Virus record (IMG/VR): IMGVR_UViG_3300049215_000529
Span: 124,001 to 188,000 of that record
Reading direction: 5' to 3' (one strand)
Length of the DNA: 64,000 bases
Shown here piece by piece: positions 7,816-61,743 of the stretch; the stretch's first letter is position 1, and each line of letters starts with the position of its first letter. The notes under the pieces are model-generated. The model was given only the letters and a program-made list of their open reading frames with translations, searched no databases and was not told where the DNA came from. Both the position numbers and the translations under genes were made by a program.

Positions 7816-7857
7816 TATATCTCCAATACCTATATATCTAAAGAGGAATAGGTATTT

Positions 7858-11077: not shown

Positions 11078-11092
11078 TTATAATCCACAAAT

Positions 11093-11113
11093 AAAAATAG
11101 CTCCTTTCGGAGC
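11093..11113 (-). terminator. Intrinsic terminator after tRNA array
   Basis: GCTCC-GAAA-GGAGC followed by TATTTTT on the minus strand. Confidence 0.7.
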
Positions 11114-11116
11114 TTC

Positions 11117-11191
11117 TGGTATCCCCAACAGGAATCGAACCTGTACTGATCGTTTCGAAGACGATCGTGATATCCTTTTCACTATAGGGAC
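11117..11191 (-). tRNA. tRNA-Arg(TCG)
   Basis: ATCGT-CT TCG AA-ACGAT arm, GTTCGA T loop, encoded CCA. Confidence 0.85.
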
Positions 11192-11228
11192 ATACATCTC
11201 TTATGTCAAGGGATCAATCTCAAAATAA

Positions 11229-11307
11229 GAGCGGTCTTTGACTCGAACGTTTCTCGATGATGAAATTCCGAATATCTGGTTCCTGCATGTAAATGCTTCA
11301 TTCGCTC
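11229..11307 (-). ncRNA. Candidate structured RNA motif, copy A
   Basis: GAGCG/CGCTC closing stem; CGAATG, TTACATG, TCATCA blocks shared with 61624..61743. Confidence 0.4.
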
Positions 11308-11373
11308 ATCTTGCGAATGGGATCCATGCCCCGTCTTTCCTTAAAAGAAACGGCATGACAGCGACGACTGCCC

Positions 11374-11452
<79 letters not shown>

Positions 11453-11456
11453 ATAA

Positions 11457-11894
11457 TTACAAACGTATGCCTTTATAGTAGTTGAATTGCTTTGCTGTTT
11501 TCTTTTTGTGACAGTTGGCACACCTTACGTCACATTTTTGAATTTCTTGTTTTATTGTCTCCAAGCTGAGCGTTCGCATCTCGCTCACATTATAAGTCTT
11601 GTCGCTACGATGGTCAAATTCTAAAACTATCGGATCTGTTTCTCCACAATCAATACATGGATTTTCTTTCAAGTAATCAATCATGAACTGCAAATTACTT
11701 ACTCTAATTTTATAATTGCGTTTCTTTGCTTTCGCAAGGTAATAATCTGTACGTAACTCGTAATGTTCTTTGTGAAGAACAGCTATACATTTCTTGCAAC
11801 GATGCTGAAGTCCGTCTTTCGAGCCAGCTCTTTTATTGAAATGATCTTCTAATGGGGTAGGATAATCTGTTTTACACTTCGTACAAATCTTCAT
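11457..11894 (-). CDS. HNH homing endonuclease
   Basis: CIDCG...LEFDH...CANCH. Confidence 0.8.
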   Translation of the reverse strand: MKICTKCKTDYPTPLEDHFNKRAGSKDGLQHRCKKCIAVLHKEHYELRTDYYLAKAKKRNYKIRVSNLQFMIDYLKENPCIDCGETDPIVLEFDHRSDKTYNVSEMRTLSLETIKQEIQKCDVRCANCHKKKTAKQFNYYKGIRL

Positions 11895-11935
11895 ACAAAG
11901 GATACGAAACTATTGATACATTTCGTATCAAATTC

Positions 11936-12021
11936 TGGCACGCCCGCTCGGAGTTGAACCGAGATAAAGAGTTTCGTAGACTCTTACGTAGACTCTTACG
12001 TAGATCCGCTACGACGGGCGT
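11936..12021 (-). pseudogene. Pseudo-tRNA-Arg(ACG) with a 12-bp tandem duplication in the D/anticodon region
   Basis: Intact acceptor stem, T arm, CCA and AAGAGT-CT ACG AA-ACTCTT arm; CGTAGACTCTTA x2 plus a partial third copy. Confidence 0.7.
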
Positions 12022-12024
12022 ATT

Positions 12025-12099
12025 TGGTATCTCTGATTGGACTCGAACCAACATAAAACTGCTTAGAAGGCAGCTGCCTTTCCATTAGACTACAGAGAC
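12025..12099 (-). tRNA. tRNA-Arg(TCT)
   Basis: GCTGC-CT TCT AA-GCAGT arm, CCA. Confidence 0.88.
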
Positions 12100-12116
12100 A
12101 TAAAACAAAACTTACT

Positions 12117-12193
12117 TGGCATGCCCAGAAGGATTTGAACCCTCAACCTATCGGGTAGAAGCCGATCGCTCTGTCCAGTTGAGCTATGAGCAC
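12117..12193 (-). tRNA. tRNA-Arg(TCT), second copy
   Basis: ATCGG-CT TCT AC-CCGAT arm, CCA. Confidence 0.9.
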
Positions 12194-12213
12194 ATAAAGA
12201 AACCAAAGTTTCT

Positions 12214-12288
12214 TGGTGATCCCTACGGGAATCGAACCCGTGTTAACAGATTGAGAATCTGCCGTCCTAGCCGCTAGACGAAGGGACC
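12214..12288 (-). tRNA. tRNA-Glu(CTC)
   Basis: GCAGA-TT CTC AA-TCTGT arm, CCA. Confidence 0.9.
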
Positions 12289-12319
12289 ATCGTATCTATT
12301 ATATCAGCTTATTAGCCGA

Positions 12320-12517
12320 TTAATGCCATCTAATTTCTTGTGGCTTTGGTTTGCAAACCGCAGGAGAATCAACTCCGTAAAATCCACAATACTCACCACG
12401 AGAACACTCACCATCATTTCCACAGAATTTTGCACCCTTAGGAACCGAACTCATGTCTACTTTATAAGCACATCCGATAACAAAAGCAACTGCTAACAAA
12501 ATTAATACTTTTTTCAT
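12320..12517 (-). CDS. Small Cys-rich predicted lipoprotein
   Basis: Signal peptide with VIGC lipobox; CxxDxECxxGxxC. Confidence 0.6.
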   Translation of the reverse strand: MKKVLILLAVAFVIGCAYKVDMSSVPKGAKFCGNDGECSRGEYCGFYGVDSPAVCKPKPQEIRWH

Positions 12518-12592
12518 TGGTGATCTGTACGAGAATCGAACTCGTGTGACAGCCTTGAAAGGGCTGGGTCCTAACCGCTAGACGAACAGACC
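12518..12592 (-). tRNA. tRNA-Glu(TTC)
   Basis: CAGCC-CT TTC AA-GGCTG arm, CCA. Confidence 0.92.
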
Positions 12593-12594
12593 GT

Positions 12595-12669
12595 TGGTAC
12601 TCCGTAGGGGTATCGATCCCCTTTTTCCTGGGTGAAAACCAAGTATCCTAGCCACTAGATGAACGGAGC
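12595..12669 (-). tRNA. tRNA-Glu(TTC), second copy, ATCGA T loop
   Basis: CTTGG-TT TTC AC-CCAGG arm, CCA. Confidence 0.85.
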
Positions 12670-12678
12670 ATAACTTAC

Positions 12679-12755
12679 TGGGGTGAGCGACGGGATTCGA
12701 ACCCGCTTATCGAGTGGTCACAACACCCGACCATTACCAAATGGAAACGCACACC
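12679..12755 (-). tRNA. tRNA-His(GTG)
   Basis: GGGTG-TT GTG AC-CACTC arm, encoded G-1 and C73, CCA. Confidence 0.85.
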
Positions 12756-12766
12756 ATAAACTTACT

Positions 12767-12843
12767 TGGGGTGTCGTACGGGTTTCGATCCCGTCGAAGA
12801 TTGGTTCACAGCCAACCGGGGTCACCAGCTCCCTCACGACACC
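12767..12843 (-). tRNA. tRNA-His(GTG), second copy, ATCGA T loop
   Basis: GTTGG-CT GTG AA-CCAAT arm, encoded G-1 and C73, CCA. Confidence 0.85.
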
Positions 12844-12910
12844 ATAATCTGGTAATATTCTTGCTTAATTATTAGTATATTTCTATATATCCTAGTTCAA
12901 GGGGTTTTTA

Positions 12911-45054: not shown

Positions 45055-45969
45055 TTACCCTCTTGGAAAGAATGAAGAATCAGATCTGTTGAATAATTGA
45101 CTGTCTAAAGCAATAAGCTTATCGAAGTCTTCTACCGCATAGAAAGCAGGATCAATGGCTTTCATGCCATATTTTGCGCCAAATAAGGCGCCGACAATAG
45201 CGGCAGTCGTGTCAGTATCTCCACCAGCCTTGATAGCAGTTACCACTGCATCATAGTAGTTATCAAACTTCAAGAAGCAATATAGTGCTGCTGGAACTGT
45301 TTCTTGAACGTTAGCCTTGGTACCAAGTACCTTGAGAGCTTGCCGTGGGCTAATGTGGTCAGAGCTAATCAAAGCATCTAAACTATAGACAGTATTCTTT
45401 ACCTTACTATCTGGCAAGTGAGCCCAAATCTTTTCTAACAAATTGTCAGAATCATCATTGACAGCGTAATAAGCTGCCACTGCAATAGCAATCGAACCAG
45501 CCTCAGCATCTGGTGATACGTGGGTGATAGCACTATCAACTTTACAGATATCGACTAATGATTTGAGGTCATTGCGGAAATAGACTCCAAATGGTGCGGA
45601 GCGCATAGCGGTACCATTGCCAAGAGAGCCAACAATACCAGATTCACTCCAATGTTTGCCAGAAGTCAAATTCTGAATTGCCATCAAGGTAGTTTTGCCC
45701 CAACCTCTAGCTCGACCAGAAGTCATCCAATCTACGTACCTAGCAGACAAATCGTCTGGATTGAAACCACGATTCTCAATTAGAGATTCGGCAACCATCA
45801 AACTCATTTGAGTATCATCTGAGTATTGTCCTGGTTGTAGCTTATGGTGTTCACTACCCAAGAAACTTTTGCCATCCCATTCCAATAAGGCTGGGTTGTT
45901 TATTAGCTTAGTTTCAAACGGAACGCCAAGTGCATCTGCAACAGCTGTTCCTAATAGTACGTTACTCAT
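45055..45969 (-). CDS. ADP-ribosylglycohydrolase (DraG/ARH family)
   Basis: DALG, YSDDTQM, GNGTAMR, TH, GGDTDT. Confidence 0.93.
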   Translation of the reverse strand: MSNVLLGTAVADALGVPFETKLINNPALLEWDGKSFLGSEHHKLQPGQYSDDTQMSLMVAESLIENRGFNPDDLSARYVDWMTSGRARGWGKTTLMAIQNLTSGKHWSESGIVGSLGNGTAMRSAPFGVYFRNDLKSLVDICKVDSAITHVSPDAEAGSIAIAVAAYYAVNDDSDNLLEKIWAHLPDSKVKNTVYSLDALISSDHISPRQALKVLGTKANVQETVPAALYCFLKFDNYYDAVVTAIKAGGDTDTTAAIVGALFGAKYGMKAIDPAFYAVEDFDKLIALDSQLFNRSDSSFFPRG

Positions 45970-46698: not shown

Positions 46699-48099
46699 TT
46701 AAGCACCTTCATGACGAACTCTCTTTCTAATTTCTTCGAAATTATCGTCCACCAAAATCTCACCATTCTCATATACCGTCTTCATAACAGTGCGTTTATG
46801 AGAAACCTCATCTTCAAACAAAGGAACGGTTTCATAACCGCCGCGTTCATTGAAGCACAAATCCAAACGTCCTGCTTTGCTTGCCTTGCCCTTGTCAGTC
46901 ACTGGATCTTTGAATACATCCACCGATTTGTCTCCGATGAAAATATGGCTGCACTTCATAGCAAATTTTTCAGTATCACGGTTGAGTTGTTGTAGCAAAG
47001 CGCCACCCATACCAAAAGCAATGTTCGTGGCACTGTAACCATTGTCCATCAAAGTGTCTAGGATCAGCTGGATAGACCTTTCATTGATGCCGTCGCCCTG
47101 AATGATACGGACATTTTTCAAGACCTTATAGCCCCTCTTGTTAATGGTCGTTCCAAACTTTTCTTCCAATAGTTTAACGGTCTTTAGCACTACCGTAGGA
47201 GGATGACCAGAGTCGGGGCGAATGATGACCACTGCACCAGAATCAATCACTTCCTGCTTCAACTGATCACCCCACAAGTGAGAACAAGCATTCCACAAGT
47301 CGTAAGAGTCCGATACACAGGCAACCAAGGCGCCCGGCTTAGCGAATTGCTTTAGCATATTACGATATGCTTCAACTTCATTTTCTTTGCCCCAAGAAGT
47401 AATGGAGCTATGTTCTGCTGCCGGAATGCTGAATCCAGCCATTGGAATATTGTAGTACTCATTGGCACATAACACTCCCACAACCGTATCACTTCCCATA
47501 AAATTGACCAAGTGGGCTGCGCCACCAATCATAGCAGACTCTTGGCTACTAACTCCACGCGAGCCAAAGTCATGAAGCTTAAAGCTGATTTCTGCTTGCG
47601 GATCATCCGAAGATGCTTGCAATGCACGCAAAATAATACCACGAATTGTACGACTGCGGCTAGCTACCGTGATAGGATACCAAACCCTAAGCAACATGGT
47701 TTCAATCCAAGAAACAATCCAAAACACTTTCGGATCAGTAGATTCAATACTGACAAGAATATTATGGGTTGGAACCACAGTTCCTTCTGGTACGGCGCGA
47801 ATACGAATGGGGAGCTTGCCTTTCAAATCTTTGGCAATGTACATCCAGCCGTCATAGTTGAATGGCTCGCCATGTGCCGCAAAGAGTACCTTGGCTTTCT
47901 CAACCTCTTCTACTGTAACTCGATGAGTCAAATATTCCTTCAAGTAGTATTGCAATCCAAAGAAAACAGTTTCACTGTATTCTCCGCCTCGGCTTTCGAT
48001 GTAGGAGAACATACTTGTGGTACCAGGAGGATACTGCAAGTAGTGGGAAACTTTGTAGCTGTCTGTATCAAACAAGTAACTAAAACGATTGGTTTTCAT
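46699..48099 (-). CDS. nadV: Nicotinamide phosphoribosyltransferase
   Basis: DTDSYKVSH, LHDFGSRG, IPAAEHS, VSDSYD, RPDSG, QGDG, GMGG. Confidence 0.95.
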   Translation of the reverse strand: MKTNRFSYLFDTDSYKVSHYLQYPPGTTSMFSYIESRGGEYSETVFFGLQYYLKEYLTHRVTVEEVEKAKVLFAAHGEPFNYDGWMYIAKDLKGKLPIRIRAVPEGTVVPTHNILVSIESTDPKVFWIVSWIETMLLRVWYPITVASRSRTIRGIILRALQASSDDPQAEISFKLHDFGSRGVSSQESAMIGGAAHLVNFMGSDTVVGVLCANEYYNIPMAGFSIPAAEHSSITSWGKENEVEAYRNMLKQFAKPGALVACVSDSYDLWNACSHLWGDQLKQEVIDSGAVVIIRPDSGHPPTVVLKTVKLLEEKFGTTINKRGYKVLKNVRIIQGDGINERSIQLILDTLMDNGYSATNIAFGMGGALLQQLNRDTEKFAMKCSHIFIGDKSVDVFKDPVTDKGKASKAGRLDLCFNERGGYETVPLFEDEVSHKRTVMKTVYENGEILVDDNFEEIRKRVRHEGA

Positions 48100-48119
48100 T
48101 ATACTCTCCGTATGTTTGC

Positions 48120-48144
48120 CATTCGTTCTCTCAGTGAGAACTTG
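48120..48144 (-). promoter_or_regulatory. Conserved dyad/hairpin upstream of nadV
   Basis: CAAGTTCTC-ACTGA-GAGAACGAATG; 23/25 identical to 49188..49212. Confidence 0.65.
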
Positions 48145-48146
48145 GC

Positions 48147-49160
48147 TCAGAACTTGGAAACAAAATACTTTATTATATGGTAGTGGTCCTCGAAAAATTC
48201 ATTCTCCATCGAATGAAATTCGCCCAAAGGTAACCAAAACGCTCTCTCTGCATCGTCAGCTCCTTTTACTTGAGGGAGTGGACCTATCCCCAAATCAATT
48301 AGGTATGCATTAGTAATAGTACGACCGCGAGCAGAACGCAAGGGGTCATCAAATACTTTAAAGTCGGCTATCGATTTTTTTAAATCTGGAGTATTAATTT
48401 TGATACCGGTTTCCTCTTTTAATTCTCTGAGGGCGGCGTCTTGCAATTTCTCTTTTTGATTGACGAAACCACCAGGCAGAGCCAGCAAACCCTTACCAGG
48501 ATTAGACCTTCTAGTCACAATCAATACGTGACCAGACTTCACAACTATTGTATCAACAGTTACAAATATGGGTGGAAATGGGGCTCCTCGCCATTGTTCT
48601 TTGTAATTGTCTATAAAATACTTTTCTTGCTTTATGTTCACGAATTCTTTGGTTTGCTTAAAATTTTCTAAATATTCAGCAACACCATTTGGTACCATTG
48701 TTTTGTAAGATGCGTTATGTGAAAAATATAAATCTCTAACTTGGGTGGCATGAAAATTATATTCTGTCCCGCATTGAATATATTTATATTGGGGAAAAAG
48801 TTTCAAATAATATGATGATTCATCACTTTCGTATCCTATTAGGGATACTTTTTCGGAATAATCCGTGGCTTCACTCACTTTTTGTTGAAGTGTTGATATC
48901 CACAAATTATCATTGTAAGTATAATCCTTCATTGAAATAAATATCACTCTATCTTTTTCTTCCGAAGAGAGACACCGCCTAATCATTTCTTGACGCTCAT
49001 CGCCAGACCACGGATTTCTTATGGTGCGGGGCGAACCACAACTTCCCACCACCACAATCACCTTTTCTGCTATGGTAAGAGCTTTGTCCAAAATAAATTT
49101 GTGAGCTTTCTGAAGGGGAGAAAAACGCCCAATGAATACACAAAAATCAAATTTTTCCAT
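48147..49160 (-). CDS. natV: Bifunctional NMN adenylyltransferase/Nudix ADP-ribose pyrophosphatase (NatV/NadM-Nudix; start MEKFD)
   Basis: GRFSPLQKAH, RNPW, HAT.VR; Nudix PGG.....E....AALRELKEETG, RGRTI, DDA. Confidence 0.92.
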   Translation of the reverse strand: MEKFDFCVFIGRFSPLQKAHKFILDKALTIAEKVIVVVGSCGSPRTIRNPWSGDERQEMIRRCLSSEEKDRVIFISMKDYTYNDNLWISTLQQKVSEATDYSEKVSLIGYESDESSYYLKLFPQYKYIQCGTEYNFHATQVRDLYFSHNASYKTMVPNGVAEYLENFKQTKEFVNIKQEKYFIDNYKEQWRGAPFPPIFVTVDTIVVKSGHVLIVTRRSNPGKGLLALPGGFVNQKEKLQDAALRELKEETGIKINTPDLKKSIADFKVFDDPLRSARGRTITNAYLIDLGIGPLPQVKGADDAERAFWLPLGEFHSMENEFFEDHYHIIKYFVSKF

Positions 49161-49187
49161 ATTAACCTCGCTCTTCTTTAGAGCATG

Positions 49188-49212
49188 CATTCGTCCTCTC
49201 AATGAGAACTTG
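49188..49212 (-). promoter_or_regulatory. Conserved dyad/hairpin upstream of natV
   Basis: CAAGTTCTC-ATTGA-GAGGACGAATG. Confidence 0.65.
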
Positions 49213-49215
49213 CAT

Positions 49216-49980
49216 TCAAACATATATCACGATATTAGTAGCACAATTGGTTTGAAATTTAATAAGTTGGTCTATCCATTTTACCCACGCCGAATATGAC
49301 ATATCTAATTTGGCACGATTACAGACCCAGCAACAAGTTACACAATTCTGTATGGTATAATCGCTATTGCTATCCAACCTATCTATGCCATTATAATTAA
49401 ATATGATTGTGTTATCGGTTCTTTTAATAACTACAGTTTTATTGGGAGATACGCCACAATAATGGCAATCTTTAGATATTAGAGATGAGAATTCATCATA
49501 CGATAATTTCCACTCAATATTTCTGCGCTTAGCATTTCTTTTATATGAATTCAAAATTCTTTTGGTTGCTCTATCATCTTCTGATAATAAACCAATTGTT
49601 GAGTTTTTATTTTGAGCACGCTTGCATCCGCAACTTTTTGATGCACCAGCGATTAAGTTTTTCGAAGGAATATAACAAATTGTTCCACAAATACATTTGC
49701 ATTCCCATATAATTGAGCCATTATTCGATCTTTCATCAGTGATTTTCAATACTGACAAAAATCCAAATCTCATTCCCAAAAGACATGAATAATCTGCAAA
49801 ACATACTCTTTTTCCACAAGAGCGGGAGCGACCTGTTACCAAGTCGGCTGTTCTAATTGATTTTTCAAAACCACAAATACATCTAACTAAGGTGCGAGAT
49901 TTTGGCTTATTTATTTCGATTACTGTCCAAGAACCAAATTGATCATTACAAAAAACATGATATTTAGATTTTAAAGGCAT
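49216..49980 (-). CDS. HNH homing endonuclease with repeated Cys-rich N-terminal modules
   Basis: C.CG...SCG x2; CHYCG...GIDRLDSN..Y...NCVTCC.VCN. Confidence 0.85.
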   Translation of the reverse strand: MPLKSKYHVFCNDQFGSWTVIEINKPKSRTLVRCICGFEKSIRTADLVTGRSRSCGKRVCFADYSCLLGMRFGFLSVLKITDERSNNGSIIWECKCICGTICYIPSKNLIAGASKSCGCKRAQNKNSTIGLLSEDDRATKRILNSYKRNAKRRNIEWKLSYDEFSSLISKDCHYCGVSPNKTVVIKRTDNTIIFNYNGIDRLDSNSDYTIQNCVTCCWVCNRAKLDMSYSAWVKWIDQLIKFQTNCATNIVIYV

Positions 49981-50001
49981 AACTATTCCGATAGAAGTTA
50001 C

Positions 50002-50043
50002 CTCCTCACCGGAGCATAAGTTTTTGTATTTCCTCTCTGGAAA
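50002..50043 (-). promoter_or_regulatory. Tandem pentaloop hairpins (TTTCC-AGAGA-GGAAA; CTCC-GGTGA-GGAG)
   Basis: Intergenic; same arrangement at 50449..50495. Confidence 0.55.
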
Positions 50044-50052
50044 CTTTATAGA

Positions 50053-50082
50053 TTTTGATGAAAGAACTAACCTTCATCAAAA
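50053..50082. repeat. 10-bp inverted repeat
   Basis: TTTTGATGAA...TTCATCAAAA. Confidence 0.8.
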
Positions 50083-50090
50083 TTGACTAA

Positions 50091-50417
50091 TTAATTGGGT
50101 TTTGACTCTGGTGGAGTTTGTGGATTGGAGACATCATCTACATGATTTCCGTCCTCATCCATATGAGCCCCACAATCCTTGCAGGTATGTGGTCTCTTAT
50201 CCCATTCGTCCCAAAACTCATTCTCTGTCCACCCAACAGAAACCAAAAATAATTTCCAGAAAGATATAAACCTGACATCAAACTCATCAGGTGACTCATT
50301 GGGATGGAAAGTATCATGTAGTACATCAAAAAACGCGTCTATGCGCTCAAAATCCATTCTTTCGATGATAGTTAACCCGGTTGATTGTTCGTCCAATACA
50401 ATATTTGCTTTTTTCAT
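50091..50417 (-). CDS. Hypothetical protein
   Basis: GGAG SD; first gene after the 50521 promoter. Confidence 0.65.
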   Translation of the reverse strand: MKKANIVLDEQSTGLTIIERMDFERIDAFFDVLHDTFHPNESPDEFDVRFISFWKLFLVSVGWTENEFWDEWDKRPHTCKDCGAHMDEDGNHVDDVSNPQTPPESKPN

Positions 50418-50448
50418 AGTATACTCCTATAATTTCGGTCTGTTAAAC

Positions 50449-50495
50449 CTCCTCACCGGAGAACTATGTGAAAAATTAAAATCCCTCACTGGGAT
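50449..50495 (-). promoter_or_regulatory. Tandem pentaloop hairpins (ATCCC-AGTGA-GGGAT; CTCC-GGTGA-GGAG)
   Basis: In predicted 5' UTR; ACCTCCTCACCGGAG is identical to 50000..50014. Confidence 0.55.
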
Positions 50496-50520: not shown

Positions 50521-50548
50521 AATATAACCATGCACTGCGTGATGTCAA
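50521..50548 (-). promoter_or_regulatory. sigma70-like promoter TTGACA-N16-TATATT heading the NAD-salvage run
   Basis: Motif directly after a terminator-like hairpin. Confidence 0.6.
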
Positions 50549-50631: not shown

Positions 50632-51594
50632 TCAAATCCTACTGTACATTGGTTCAGCCTGCTCTCGTGGGAAAGCTCGACTAAAAGAACCAATTCTTGG
50701 AGTATTACCCAAGCTCATAATGTGTTGTTTCTTGTCGCCAGGAAAACCGGAAGCATGAGGGGCTGGAACATTGCGTTCCTTCAACTTGGCAACCAAATCG
50801 TCCCACCACATGTAACGGACTCTAACAGTTTCAGATAGAGTTGGCTTAATCAAACCTGTTACATAAGTAATCTTTTGATCAACATGTTCTCCTGCACCAA
50901 CTGCAGCTAAACTCTCTAGTTCTTTAGGAGGAGAAGCATCGCATGTATAAATTCCACTAGCATCACCAATATTTATACTATTGGAAACAACTGAATCAAA
51001 AGATTGACTGTTTCTTAATACATTGGAAGAATTGAAAGTTGCATTGCCTGAACCAAGTCCACCAGTATTGCCGCCGATGGTATTGTACCAAATGACAGGA
51101 TAATAAAATGGATTACTATAATGCTTAGGATAGTGATGATGGTGATGCTCTTCAGTAACAATAACAGGAGGGCTCAATCTAACTGGTTCCACATGACCTT
51201 CTGTAAAAACGGCTGCAGCGATAATTCCTCTGCTAGATAGATCGCCATGAGTATGAACGGCTACACTATTGTTCGCACTAGTAAATATTAATTGCGCACC
51301 GCCATTACTGGTTTCTGGCCAAGCTTTTATATTTAAGGTGCCATATCCATTTACAACCCACATATCATCGGAGACTTTTGTATCAGCCTTATCTCCAGTA
51401 AGAATGTCAGTTCCATCAATAGATAATTTTACTTGAACTTTCTGCCAAGAATGATTTTTGAATACAATTTCAAATGGTTCATCTCCCCAAGCTCCAACAG
51501 TATTGATGCCATCTACGTAATATTGACGGAGGCTCTTCTTATCGAACTTTGGGTGGTGTGAAATGATTTCTAGTGTGTAATTTGGGTTAGACAT
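50632..51594 (-). CDS. Hypothetical protein (320 aa)
   Basis: Long ORF; VDG.D.L.G segment and His run. Confidence 0.7.
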   Translation of the reverse strand: MSNPNYTLEIISHHPKFDKKSLRQYYVDGINTVGAWGDEPFEIVFKNHSWQKVQVKLSIDGTDILTGDKADTKVSDDMWVVNGYGTLNIKAWPETSNGGAQLIFTSANNSVAVHTHGDLSSRGIIAAAVFTEGHVEPVRLSPPVIVTEEHHHHHYPKHYSNPFYYPVIWYNTIGGNTGGLGSGNATFNSSNVLRNSQSFDSVVSNSINIGDASGIYTCDASPPKELESLAAVGAGEHVDQKITYVTGLIKPTLSETVRVRYMWWDDLVAKLKERNVPAPHASGFPGDKKQHIMSLGNTPRIGSFSRAFPREQAEPMYSRI

Positions 51595-51677
51595 AATATC
51601 TCCTGTGTTAGTTAACCTTCAACACCGTATATATCATATCTTTCATAGAAATTATCACTTTTTATCATTAATTTCAG

Positions 51678-58262: not shown

Positions 58263-58335
58263 GGTTCCGGGGTTGGGGATCGAACCCAAATCAGATCATT
58301 CGGAATAACCTATCCTGCCATTAGACGAACCCGGA
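58262..58335 (-). tRNA. tRNA with CCG (Arg) anticodon on a Gln-type body
   Basis: GGTTA-TT CCG AA-TGATC arm; U1:A72; D arm almost identical to neighbouring tRNA-Gln; CCA. Confidence 0.75.
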
Positions 58336-58409
58336 TGGCTGGGATACTAGGATTCGAACCTAGATAAAAGGATTCAGAGACCTTTGTCCTGCCGTTAGAC
58401 GATATCCCA
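58336..58409 (-). tRNA. tRNA-Gln(CTG)
   Basis: AAAGG T-CT CTG AA-T CCTTT arm, U1:A72, G73, CCA. Confidence 0.88.
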
Positions 58410-58436
58410 ATCAACATAATGTAAACTTATTACCAG

Positions 58437-61439: not shown

Positions 61440-61443
61440 ATAA

Positions 61444-61521
61444 TGGAGCGGGTGATGGGACTCGAACCCATGATGATGTCTGCTTGGAAGGCAGATGCCG
61501 TCGCCACTGAGCCACACCCGC
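61444..61521 (-). tRNA. tRNA-Gly(TCC)
   Basis: TCTGC-CT TCC AA-GCAGA arm, U73, CCA. Confidence 0.9.
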
Positions 61522-61544
61522 ATTTTAACAGCTTTGCACTTACT

Positions 61545-61618
61545 TGGAGCGGTTAACGAGAATCGAACTCGTGTCCCTAGAATGGCAATCTAGGATTCTA
61601 CCATTGGACCATAACCGC
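61545..61618 (-). tRNA. tRNA-Gly(GCC)
   Basis: CTAGA-TT GCC AT-TCTAG arm, CCA. Confidence 0.9.
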
Positions 61619-61623
61619 TTAAT

Positions 61624-61743
61624 AGACGACTAAAATTGATGAGATCTTTTTCCAATCTCTTACGAGAAAGGTTGATGGGTTTGAACCATCTATTCTAAAG
61701 TTTCCCTTAGAAATTTACCATGTAATCACATCAGCATTCGTCT
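61624..61743 (-). ncRNA. Candidate structured RNA motif, copy B, with degenerate tRNA-like insert
   Basis: AGACGA/TCGTCT closing stem; CGAATG, TTACATG, TCATCA blocks; inner GATGG-TTCAAAC-CCATC T-arm-like hairpin. Confidence 0.45.

Follow-up and report, generated by a model that had tools for sequence, protein, structure and literature searches.

The window analysed here, 64,000 nucleotides of IMG/VR virus record IMGVR_UViG_3300049215_000529 (positions 124,001 to 188,000 of a 204,190-bp phage record), encodes on its minus strand two NAD-salvage genes, natV and nadV, preceded by a small gene, orf108, and by an HNH endonuclease gene, orf254. NatV is an NMN adenylyltransferase with a Nudix domain (PF01467 + PF00293) and NadV is a nicotinamide phosphoribosyltransferase (PF18127 + PF04095). 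The orf254 product was assigned as an HNH endonuclease by PHROG 374, while orf108 has no family match. The only Nudix domain found in the record, which is estimated to be 47% complete and leaves aside any NrtR of the host, is that of NatV itself, and no Nudix-HTH gene was found in it. The leaders of these four genes contain the following features, listed in the direction of transcription.

50521-50548, minus strand: sigma-70-type promoter TTGACA-16 nt-TATATT that starts the transcript carrying the orf108 leader (leader A).
50481-50495, minus strand: hairpin A1, ATCCC-AGTGA-GGGAT, the first hairpin of the orf108 leader, followed by UUUUAAUUUUU.
50448-50462, minus strand: hairpin A2, (T)CTCC-GGTGA-GGAG(G), whose 5' arm CUCC can instead pair with the true Shine-Dalgarno (SD) of orf108.
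50415-50427, minus strand: the true SD GGAG (50424-50427) and ATG (50415-50417) of orf108, read from the sequence.
50052-50083, minus strand: a 13-bp A/U-rich hairpin after orf108, at the start of the endonuclease leader (leader B).
50028-50044, minus strand: hairpin B1, GTTTCC-AGAGA-GGAAAT, the first hairpin of the orf254 leader.
50002-50014, minus strand: hairpin B2, CTCC-GGTGA-GGAG; the 15 nt CTCCGGTGAGGAGGT are identical to A2.
49221-49228, minus strand: a GATATATG box, 11 nt upstream of the natV hairpin, a member of a GATATATA-like motif seen before many genes of this phage; promoter function is inferred.
49185-49215, minus strand: natV hairpin 1, with lower stem AUGCA/UGCAU, an a/gaa internal loop and upper stem GTTCTC-ATTGA-GAGGAC (49193-49209).
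49170-49184, minus strand: natV hairpin 2, GCTCT-AAAGA-AGAGC, directly before the SD GAGG (49166-49169) and the ATG (49158-49160).
48118-48146, minus strand: nadV hairpin 1, with lower stem GCCA/UGGC, an a/gaa internal loop and upper stem GTTCTC-ACTGA-GAGAAC (48125-48141), starting right after the natV stop codon (48147-48149).
48097-48113, minus strand: nadV hairpin 2, ATAC-GGAGA-GTAT (48101-48113), with the SD GGAG in its loop, then the ATG (48097-48099).
46699-49160, minus strand: natV (48147-49160) and nadV (46699-48099).

An earlier note, made from the sequence alone, had described six of these hairpins (A1, A2, B1, B2 and the first hairpins of natV and nadV), and this observation is confirmed, as all six lie where the note placed them. 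The natV and nadV copies do sit in a 23/25-identical block (CAAGTTCTCAYTGAGAGRACGAATG). The note placed this block 21-28 nt before each ATG, but while the nadV hairpin ends 25 nt before its ATG, the natV hairpin ends 32 nt before. The note also missed the second hairpins of the natV and nadV leaders, so that each of the four leaders carries a tandem pair, and the covarying lower stems of the natV and nadV hairpins.

To estimate how often such structures arise by chance, the whole record was scanned for C-(RNWGA)-G hairpins with at least 4 pairs (G-U allowed). Of 19 found on the minus strand, seven lie in this 2.4-kb stretch where about 0.22 are expected (Poisson P about 4e-9). The other twelve are stems of 4-6 pairs, nearly all with a G-U pair, scattered across the rest of the record. 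A covariance model scored over the whole window without filters ranked the four longer hairpins first, with A1 as the top hit (20.4 bits) and B1 at 18 bits, although these four were in its training set. Hairpin 2 of natV, which was not in the training set, scored 13 bits. The next hits inspected lie in sequence unrelated to the NAD genes, one of them antisense to an ORF.

The natV and nadV leaders fold into exactly these two hairpins as both minimum-energy and centroid structure (z -2.6 and -3.8, respectively). RNAalifold applied to 13 nadV leaders predicts both hairpins, with compensatory changes at all 6 pairs of hairpin 1. In leader A the minimum-energy fold pairs CUCC of A2 with the downstream GGAG, and AUAGU with ACUAU next to the AUG. 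The A/U-rich hairpin at 50052-50083 belongs to the minimum-energy fold of leader B, but hairpin B2 does not.

Comparison with related loci (L005, L007, L008, L010 and L012) shows that these features recur. The TTGACA-16 nt-TATATT promoter is the best promoter-like site of the region (11 of 12 matches), the same TTGACA-type promoters recur in other intergenic regions of this phage, and L005 and L007 have a promoter at the same place. Hairpin A1 corresponds to GTCCC-AGAGA-GGGGC in L005 and GTCCC-GGAGT-GGGGC in L007, and A2 covaries to CTCC-GGAGA-GGAG in L005 and CTTC-AGAGA-GAAG in L007. The A/U-rich hairpin of leader B lies upstream of natV in L005, which has no endonuclease gene. L007 has TTTCCC-AGAGA-GGGAAA plus TTCC-AGAGA-GGAA before its orf189, and some homologues of orf254 in other loci are also preceded by such hairpins. 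At the position of the box upstream of natV, L007 and L008 have tcGATATATA, and L010 and L012 have cGATATATA. Orthologues of natV hairpin 1 are GTTCCC-AGAGA-GGGAAC (L005), TTCCC-AATGA-GGGAA (L007) and TTCCC-AGTGA-GGGAA (L008), and those of natV hairpin 2 are ACTCT-ACAGA-AGGGT (L005) and ACTC-AGYGA-GGGT (L007, L008). The nadV hairpin 2 sequence, AYAC-GGAGA-GURU, is nearly invariant in the near clade.

The element is not local. Phages whose NatV is only 40-77% identical have, at the same position, a hairpin with the same pentaloop (A-N-W-G-A: AGAGA, AGUGA, AUAGA, AAAGA) and completely covarying stems, and the asymmetric loop is kept across more than 100 instances. In 72 instances every stem position uses all four Watson-Crick pairs, while the A at loop position 1 is at least 90% conserved and G4 and A5 are invariant. 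These instances were collected by a pattern that requires pairing, so the percentage paired is partly by construction, and they are phylogenetically related. The loop rule in the note (closing C-G, RNWGA) is too narrow, as the closing pair can be U-A or G-C and the family consensus is A-N-W/N-G-A. Among all hairpins with at least 5 pairs and a pentaloop in 953 kb around natV genes, the commonest loops on the coding strand are GGAGT (62), ATAGA (46), AGAGA (45), GGAGA (31) and AGTGA (21), and no other loop exceeds 21.

The module consists of a first hairpin with a 5-9-bp stem of any sequence and an A-N-W-G-A pentaloop, an A/C-rich, G-poor linker of about 5-13 nt, and a second hairpin with a weak A/U-rich stem that holds the SD GGAG in its loop and whose base abuts the AUG or includes it. 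In 71 modules compiled for analysis, which were chosen to lie 18-32 nt from the start, hairpin 1 mostly ends 20-30 nt before the start codon, and the start lies 0-3 nt after hairpin 2 in 59 of the 64 modules that have one.

Hairpin 1 precedes 44 of 149 natV genes and 45 of 91 nadV genes, but only 9 of 793 other ORFs in the same loci (odds ratio 51, P 4e-52). About half of the nadV leaders and two thirds of the natV leaders lack the canonical loop, and the cultured phages RB16, ValKK3, phiM19 and Moby show only hairpin 2. Separately, pnuC genes in two phages, a DUF6939/NADAR-like gene and an SPFH gene in the same island of a bacterium were found to carry hairpin 1, as do several small unknown ORFs. 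Synechococcus phage B23 (243 kb) and an IMG/VR phage (122 kb) each have exactly two strong copies, at natV and nadV, and five alphaproteobacterial genomes each have their variant once, at natV. Hairpin-2-like SD hairpins also occur before other genes in phage B23, so only hairpin 1 is specific. Cyanophage B23, Xanthomonas phage LucasX, moss-metagenome jumbo phages and Gammaproteobacteria share the same loop, which argues against a host-specific factor, and variants occur in Gamma- and Alphaproteobacteria. NatV is encoded in all five records checked that carry the nadV hairpin. In public RNA runs only one 151-nt contig was found, which lies inside nadV.

Covariance-model scans against Rfam found no match up to E = 10 in the window region and up to E = 1 in 11 related loci, and literature searches gave no match either; the two-hairpin leader appears to be undescribed. 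The interpretation given in the note is partly supported. Its proposals that this is an RNA-level element, that it is confined to the NAD-salvage leaders (which holds in this genome and in two further whole phage genomes) and that it has no known matching family (none was found in Rfam) are supported. Its protein-binding translational operator is plausible and is our leading reading, while its alternative of NrtR operators is not supported.

We regard the hairpins as copies of one conserved RNA leader module that marks NAD-salvage genes and probably controls how much of these anti-defence enzymes is made. The analysis itself establishes the structure, its conservation, its fixed geometry and its specificity for NAD genes, whereas the binding of any factor or metabolite, the identity of the factor and the direction of control are inferences from sequence alone. 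Our tentative model is that hairpin 1, and the similar loop of hairpin 2, would be read in a sequence-specific way by a trans-acting factor, most likely a dimeric protein. The cassette's own enzymes NatV or NadV are the obvious candidates because they travel with the element across hosts, although neither has known RNA-binding activity. Binding would change how easily the 30S subunit can open the structured start region, so that production of the NAD-rebuilding enzymes is tuned to need. In the orf108 leader the same logic would appear as a three-part switch, in which CUCC can pair either with its neighbour GGAGG, leaving the SD free, or with the real SD. The presence of the hairpins before an HNH homing-endonuclease gene and small unknown ORFs fits an operon-specific expression signal as well as it fits metabolic feedback.

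Protein-bound operators such as the MS2 coat protein/replicase operator, the T4 gp43 operator and the IRE bound by IRP1 (aconitase) are also short hairpins with loop adenines or a CAGUG-type loop, located at or just upstream of the start region, with a free stem sequence and a fixed loop, and in the IRE case the binder is a metabolic enzyme, as proposed here for NatV or NadV. The present element differs in having no bulged A or C in the stem, in coming as a tandem pair and in being spread over phages and bacteria of several phyla. C-AGUGA-G resembles the IRE loop CAGUGN in a subset only, AUAGA and AGAGA being the commonest loops, and the bulged C five pairs below the IRE hexaloop is absent. 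CsrA/RsmA sites are likewise paired hairpins with one over the SD, and hairpin 2 (AUAC-GGAGA-GUAU, NNAAGGAGUUNN) contains GGA in its loop like the CsrA consensus, but the hairpin 1 loops (AGAGA, AGUGA, AUAGA, AAAGA) lack the obligatory GGA. CsrA is not known from cyanobacteria or most Alphaproteobacteria, yet the element is present in their phages and genomes.

The nadV plus natV pathway (NARP2) rebuilds NAD+ after bacterial immune systems destroy it, and nothing has been reported about how it is controlled. A compact, portable RNA signal that marks just these genes gives a handle on that control across cyanophages, jumbo phages of plant pathogens and free-living bacteria, and a sequence tag for finding further NAD-related or anti-defence genes. 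It is a candidate new regulatory RNA class, small enough (about 50 nt) to dissect quickly. If the binder is NatV or NadV, it would be a new case of a metabolic enzyme acting as a translational repressor, and if it is a metabolite, it would be a third and far smaller NAD-related riboswitch. An unlikely but not excluded extension is that phages carry a very small new class of NAD-pathway riboswitch, or an enzyme-as-repressor circuit, together with their NAD-reconstitution genes (nadV and natV, sometimes pnuC), so that the counter-defence pathway would be translated in proportion to NAD+ loss or to the nicotinamide and ADP-ribose released by host NADase immune systems. The invariant, exposed G-A of the loop could even be a site read or modified by the ADP-ribose enzymes found in the same islands (NADAR, Tpt1/KptA).

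A factor-independent start-region cassette is a less likely explanation. In this view hairpin 1 is a 5'-terminal or processing-protected stem-loop that stabilises the mRNA and insulates the start region from upstream sequence, the linker is a ribosome standby site, hairpin 2 displays the SD, and the link to NAD genes arises only because the cassette moves between genomes with its own expression signals. In many natV leaders a -10-like or late-promoter-like box (TATAAT, TATAAATA, GATATATA) lies 5-13 nt before hairpin 1, which would place the hairpin at the 5' end of the mRNA. The linkers are G-poor and unstructured, non-NAD genes inside the operon (HNH endonuclease, orf108) carry the element, and the cassette is clearly mobile, as phages and bacteria share an identical hairpin 2, AACAC-GGAGA-GUGUU. 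However, a purely structural hairpin has no reason to keep A1, G4 and A5 of its loop while the stems turn over completely and the proteins fall to 40% identity. Typical stabilising hairpins use GNRA or UNCG loops, nadV hairpins usually have no promoter in front, and each gene of the cassette keeps its own copy.

A miniature riboswitch, in which the two purine-rich loops directly bind an NAD-related metabolite (NAD+, NMN, nicotinamide riboside, nicotinamide or ADP-ribose) and loop docking hides or frees the SD and AUG, is also unlikely on present evidence. The controlled genes (natV, nadV and pnuC) look like a metabolite regulon, the spread across host phyla (cyanophage, Xanthomonas phage, Gamma- and Alphaproteobacteria) fits a factor-free sensor, and leader A has an anti-SD/anti-anti-SD arrangement typical of an expression platform. 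The guanidine-II (mini-ykkC) riboswitch likewise has two small tandem hairpins with covarying stems, conserved loops and a variable linker, with the ribosome-binding site at the second hairpin, controls translation of one functional set of genes, and has two like loops, as the alphaproteobacterial variants do (GGAGU). Its loops, however, are ACGR tetraloops that kiss through C-G pairs, while those found here are pentaloops (ANWGA, GGAGW) that are not complementary to each other, leaving no obvious kissing pair, and the gene set is NAD salvage. Two 5-nt loops with no conserved internal loop, junction or linker nucleotides offer very little with which to build a pocket for a dinucleotide, and an endonuclease gene also carries the hairpins. 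The NAD+-I (nadA motif) and NAD+-II (pnuC motif) riboswitches are also leader RNAs of NAD-metabolism genes, NAD+-I being a tandem of two similar stem-loops with the ribosome-binding site in the second and NAD+-II preceding pnuC. Those have bulges or internal loops with conserved ACANCCCC, or a pseudoknot and a triple helix (PMC7297122, PMC10085692), whereas here the stems are plain and the genes are natV and nadV, mostly in phages. The Rfam scans gave no match to the NAD+-I, NAD+-II or mini-ykkC models, and the phage pnuC genes found here carry the hairpin module instead.

Transcription-level signals, such as intrinsic terminators, attenuators or boxB-like sites that load an antiterminator, are very unlikely. 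A1 is followed by UUUUAAUUUUU and was flagged as terminator-like, and L005 has a U-rich tail there too, but seven of the eight hairpins here, and nearly all in relatives, have no U tract and are followed by A/C-rich linkers. Lambda boxB is also a 15-nt hairpin with a 5-bp stem and a purine pentaloop ending in A, its GAAGA loop fits RNWGA, and in leader A the hairpin likewise sits soon after a promoter. The boxB loop is GNRNA, however, and boxB needs boxA and a phage N protein and acts on termination, whereas position 1 is A in at least 90% of 72 instances and no conserved upstream box or boxA-like element was seen in natV or nadV leaders. An antiterminator would not explain a fixed 20-30-nt distance to start codons, the occurrence inside operons or the restriction to NAD genes.

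DNA operators for NrtR or another dimeric transcription factor are the weakest candidate and are contradicted by the comparative data: the dyads are perfect inverted repeats in DNA, the bacterial NrtR regulon includes nadV, nadM and pnuC (PMC2330246) and the closest relatives keep GT...AC at the outer ends of the natV and nadV dyads, but NrtR sites are 21-bp palindromes in promoters with conserved half-sites and a GT-N7-AC core (PMC2330246), whereas the dyads here are 17 bp with GT-N13-AC, a spacing that is lost in more distant relatives (GAACCC/GGGTTC, CCTTTGG/CCGAAGG and other stems), and it is the non-palindromic 5-nt centre that is conserved and not the half-sites, the opposite of a dimer operator. 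G-U pairs keep the RNA helix but not the DNA symmetry, and the nadV dyad lies inside the operon with no promoter. A separate and better operator candidate, AGTGGC-N5-GCCACT between -35 and -10, exists in some natV promoters.

The window is bases 124,001-188,000 of a 204,190-bp IMG/VR phage record (39.5% G+C, estimated to be 47% complete), which was found in moss metagenomes and carries most of its genes on the minus strand. A near-identity DNA search of GenBank phages found nothing, and the only close IMG/VR contig is 100% identical and therefore uninformative. Read on the minus strand, the region holds the following genes, and the only Nudix domain found in the record is that of NatV.

50632-51594, minus strand: orf320, no family
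50091-50417, minus strand: orf108, no family
49216-49980, minus strand: orf254, HNH endonuclease, PHROG 374
48147-49160, minus strand: natV, cytidylyltransferase-like + NUDIX
46699-48099, minus strand: nadV, NAMPT_N + NAPRTase
45055-45969, minus strand: ADP-ribosylglycohydrolase, 0.7 kb downstream of nadV

The relative L007, a locus around a NatV homologue, has the same ADP-ribosylglycohydrolase gene with a LAGLIDADG endonuclease gene before it. A strong sigma-70-type promoter, TTGACA-16-TATATT (50548-50521), precedes leader A (the leader of orf108) and follows a terminator-like hairpin. A GATATATA-like box recurs just upstream of many genes of this phage and its relatives (for example window 51620-51630, 7816-7857 and 49221-49228), alongside classical TTGACA-N17-TAnnnT promoters, and may represent a second promoter class (middle or late).

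The earlier note had described six C-(RNWGA)-G pentaloop hairpins in the leaders of the NAD-salvage transcript, and all six are present as described. In the whole record, hairpins of this type with at least 4 pairs number 19 on the minus strand, and seven of them fall in this 2.4-kb stretch, where about 0.22 are expected (P about 4e-9). The seventh is ATAC-GGAGA-GTAT, over the nadV Shine-Dalgarno (SD) sequence. Folding adds an eighth, GCTCT-AAAGA-AGAGC, in the natV leader, so that each of the four leaders carries a tandem pair. The natV and nadV leaders each fold into two adjacent hairpins in both the minimum-energy and the centroid structure (z -2.6 and -3.8), and the first hairpin has a lower stem that differs between the two leaders yet still pairs (AUGCA/UGCAU against GCCA/UGGC).

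In leader A the minimum-energy structure does not form A2, the second hairpin of that leader. Instead, the CUCC arm of A2 pairs with the true SD of orf108, and AUAGU pairs with ACUAU next to the AUG, so that the GGAGG arm of A2 behaves like an anti-anti-SD. L005, a locus of a close relative, can form the equivalent long-range helix, as read by eye.

NatV homologues of 72-74% identity lie on contigs with the same gene order (pyruvyl transferase, glycosyltransferase, small ORFs, natV, nadV). Their leaders carry the same hairpins with changed but still pairing stems: GTCCC-AGAGA-GGGGC, CTCC-GGAGA-GGAG, CTTC-AGAGA-GAAG, GTTCCC-AGAGA-GGGAAC, GTCTCT-ATTGA-AGAGAC, GTTTCT-ACTGA-AGAAAC, TTCCC-AGTGA-GGGAA and ACTC-AGYGA-GGGT. 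The closing pair can be U-A.

To examine more distant relatives, 160 loci around NatV homologues of 31-57% identity were collected from metagenomes and IMG/VR, and many have the element again before natV and before nadV. Among all hairpins with at least 5 pairs and a pentaloop in these 953 kb, the commonest loops on the coding strand are GGAGT (62), ATAGA (46), AGAGA (45), GGAGA (31) and AGTGA (21), and no other loop exceeds 21. Of 146 hairpin-1-type hairpins with an ORF downstream, 113 precede a NatV or NadV homologue. A stricter count, which required a hairpin ending 15-35 nt before a possible start, gave an odds ratio of 51 (P = 4e-52). A large share of natV and nadV leaders lack the canonical loop.

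Genes with hairpin 1 ending 15-35 nt before a possible start, out of all genes of that class
natV: 44 of 149
nadV: 45 of 91
other ORFs: 9 of 793

Other genes found with the module include two PnuC nicotinamide-riboside/NMN transporters, a DUF6939/NADAR-like protein and, in a bacterial island, an SPFH/Band-7 gene. Small ORFs of unknown function (99-123 aa) are also preceded by the full two-hairpin module (L111 2300-2596 and 2657-3004; L131 2424-2747; L162 2633-3001; window 50091-50417) and may be unrecognised members of the NAD or anti-defence gene set. The natV/nadV cassette often travels with a NADAR-domain protein, and in one bacterial island it also travels with a Tpt1/KptA RNA 2'-phosphotransferase, DUF4291 and an SPFH/Band-7 protein (L148 3972-4550; L169 5030-5560; L297 5107-6251 and 9524-12078; L272 1399-2313). 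Phage RB16 also has an SPFH gene next to natV. This looks like an NAD/ADP-ribose island with RNA-directed enzymes.

Hairpin 1 of the module has a 5-9-bp stem of free sequence and the loop A-N-W-G-A. In one large clade it is closed by G-C with the loop AUAGA, and in the clade of this window it is closed by C-G or U-A with AGAGA, AGUGA, ACUGA or AUUGA. Rarer loops at the same place are AAUAGA, AGGGA, AUGGA, AGGUA and ACGGA. The linker is 5-13 nt long, A/C-rich and G-poor. Hairpin 2 has 4-10 bp, mostly A-U pairs, with GGAG in or at the loop, as in AYAC-GGAGA-GURU and NNNAA-GGAGU-UUNNN. The start codon lies 0-3 nt further on in 59 of 64 modules, and in several it lies inside the 3' arm, as in CAUUUUAAG-GAG-UUUAAAAUG. 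In nadV leaders of the AUAGA clade (for example L148 4990-5020, L134, L131 and L126) the 5' flank AAGU and the 3' flank CA of hairpin 1 are conserved across many phages although no promoter lies there, and this may be a processing site or an extension of the motif.

In a gapless alignment of 72 copies of hairpin 1, every stem position uses all four Watson-Crick pairs, while loop A1 is at least 90% conserved and G4 and A5 are invariant. The instances were collected with heuristic gene calls and a pattern that requires pairing, so the percentage paired is partly by construction, and they are related by descent, so the covariation stands without correction for phylogeny; the turnover of stem sequence against a fixed loop is the informative part. 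RNAalifold on 13 nadV leaders independently predicts both hairpins, with compensatory changes at all six pairs of hairpin 1. A MAFFT alignment of whole modules placed the two clades 4 columns out of register and was not used for a model. A loop-to-linker or loop-to-coding pseudoknot was looked for by eye only and no consistent complement was found, and an alternative pairing between the stems of hairpins 1 and 2 appears in one phage clade only (L140, L146, L148) and is not general.

Since a pre-filtered search with the 19-nt covariance model recovered nothing even in the training genome, whole genomes were scanned directly for hairpins. Synechococcus phage B23 (MN695335, 243,633 bp, Kyanoviridae) has exactly two strong modules, before natV and nadV, and a 122-kb IMG/VR phage also has exactly two, at natV and nadV. 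Xanthomonas phage LucasX has both, with the loop AUAGA. Ralstonia phage RSL1 uses UUCC-AGAGA-GGAA as the SD hairpin of both genes, Klebsiella phage RaK2 has hairpins at both genes with different loops, and RB16, ValKK3, phiM19 and Moby show only hairpin 2. A scan for hairpin-2-like SD hairpins in three genomes was noisy, and showed that hairpin 2 alone is not specific.

In bacteria most natV (nadM-Nudix) leaders lack hairpin 1, but several Gammaproteobacteria and one Betaproteobacterium have G-AUAGA/AAAGA-C followed by CAGCAA-GGAGC-UUGCUG. In five such genomes of 3.7-7 Mb, the pattern GATAGAC...AAGGRG has a real stem (5 pairs or more) at only three places, namely natV in two of the genomes and an SPFH gene in the natV island of one of them. 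Direct inspection of that island added a mismatched hairpin 1 before nadV. Alphaproteobacterial natV leaders (L245, L248, L249, L252, L253, L257, L270 and L237, at about 2420-2500) carry a variant with two GGAGU-type loops (GGGGAGUCC, then UCGAG-GGAGU-CUCGA), which occurs exactly once per genome, at natV, in the five genomes tested, with no control hits. Acidobacterial leaders share the exact hairpin 2, AACAC-GGAGA-GUGUU, with the phage clade of this window.

Rfam 15 gave no match, either in the window region up to E = 10 or in 11 related loci up to E = 1, and this includes the NAD+-I, NAD+-II and mini-ykkC models. Literature searches on nadV, natV or pnuC together with stem-loops, riboswitches or RNA motifs found no description of the element. 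We regard it as a structured cis-regulatory leader RNA, a type of element already known, for which no previous description was found. The observation made in the earlier note is confirmed, and is extended here. Its interpretation held in part, as the reading of the hairpins as an RNA element is supported but the alternative of NrtR operators is not.

The analysis establishes a conserved RNA structure of fixed geometry at the start region, with sequence constraint on three loop positions only, restricted almost entirely to NAD-salvage genes across phages of cyanobacteria and proteobacteria and some bacteria. Its function, in contrast, is entirely inferred: the loop would be read by something specific, and that reading would alter access to an SD and AUG which are already held in a weak hairpin. 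A host-specific protein is unlikely given the host range, while the cassette's own proteins travel with the element. NAD-binding enzymes acting as RNA-binding repressors have precedents of kind, such as IRP1/aconitase, which makes NatV or NadV the first candidates for the binder, although no RNA binding is known for either. An attempt to exclude NatV by finding hairpin-bearing nadV genes in genomes without natV gave no discrimination, as all five records checked encode NatV a little further away. orf108 is unlikely to be the binder, as it is acidic, has no family and is restricted to close relatives.

Direct metabolite sensing, on the model of the two-hairpin guanidine-II riboswitch, is the main rival. 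The NAD-centred gene set and the cross-phylum spread support it, but the extreme simplicity of the RNA weakens it. A factor-independent role, as a 5' stabiliser, standby site and SD display travelling with a mobile cassette, would explain why a promoter-like box lies just before many natV hairpins and why the element is also present before an HNH endonuclease gene and orf108, but it does not explain the fixed loop. Public RNA runs (moss and plant metatranscriptomes) hold only one 151-nt contig, inside nadV, from which no 5' ends could be mapped. The hairpins are not terminators in general, as only A1, the first hairpin of leader A, has a U-rich tail. Most loops begin with A and not the G of the boxB fold, and hairpin 1 lacks the GGA that CsrA needs. 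NrtR operators are 21-bp palindromes with a conserved GT-N7-AC core in promoters (PMC2330246), whereas here the half-sites are free, the asymmetric centre is fixed, the position is tied to the start codon and G-U pairs preserve only the RNA helix. Several bacterial and phage natV promoters do carry a separate palindrome, AGTGGC-N5-GCCACT, between the -35 and -10 boxes (L197, L014, L202; L297 6270-6290), which does not match the NrtR core and is a better candidate for a DNA operator.

The HNH homing-endonuclease gene orf254 (49216-49980, minus strand, with leader B at 49981-50090) sits between orf108 and natV. L005 lacks this gene, but its natV leader begins with the same A/U-rich 13-bp hairpin that here opens leader B, and B2, the second hairpin of leader B, shares 15 identical nucleotides with A2 (CTCCGGTGAGGAGGT). 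The endonuclease gene therefore seems to have been inserted between that hairpin and the natV promoter, and its leader appears to be partly copied from leader A, suggesting an insertion that copied local expression signals. Elsewhere in the window the phage carries many sequences that, by eye, are tRNA-like, in its long intergenic regions (for example 11078-12910, 58263-58436 and 61440-61730).
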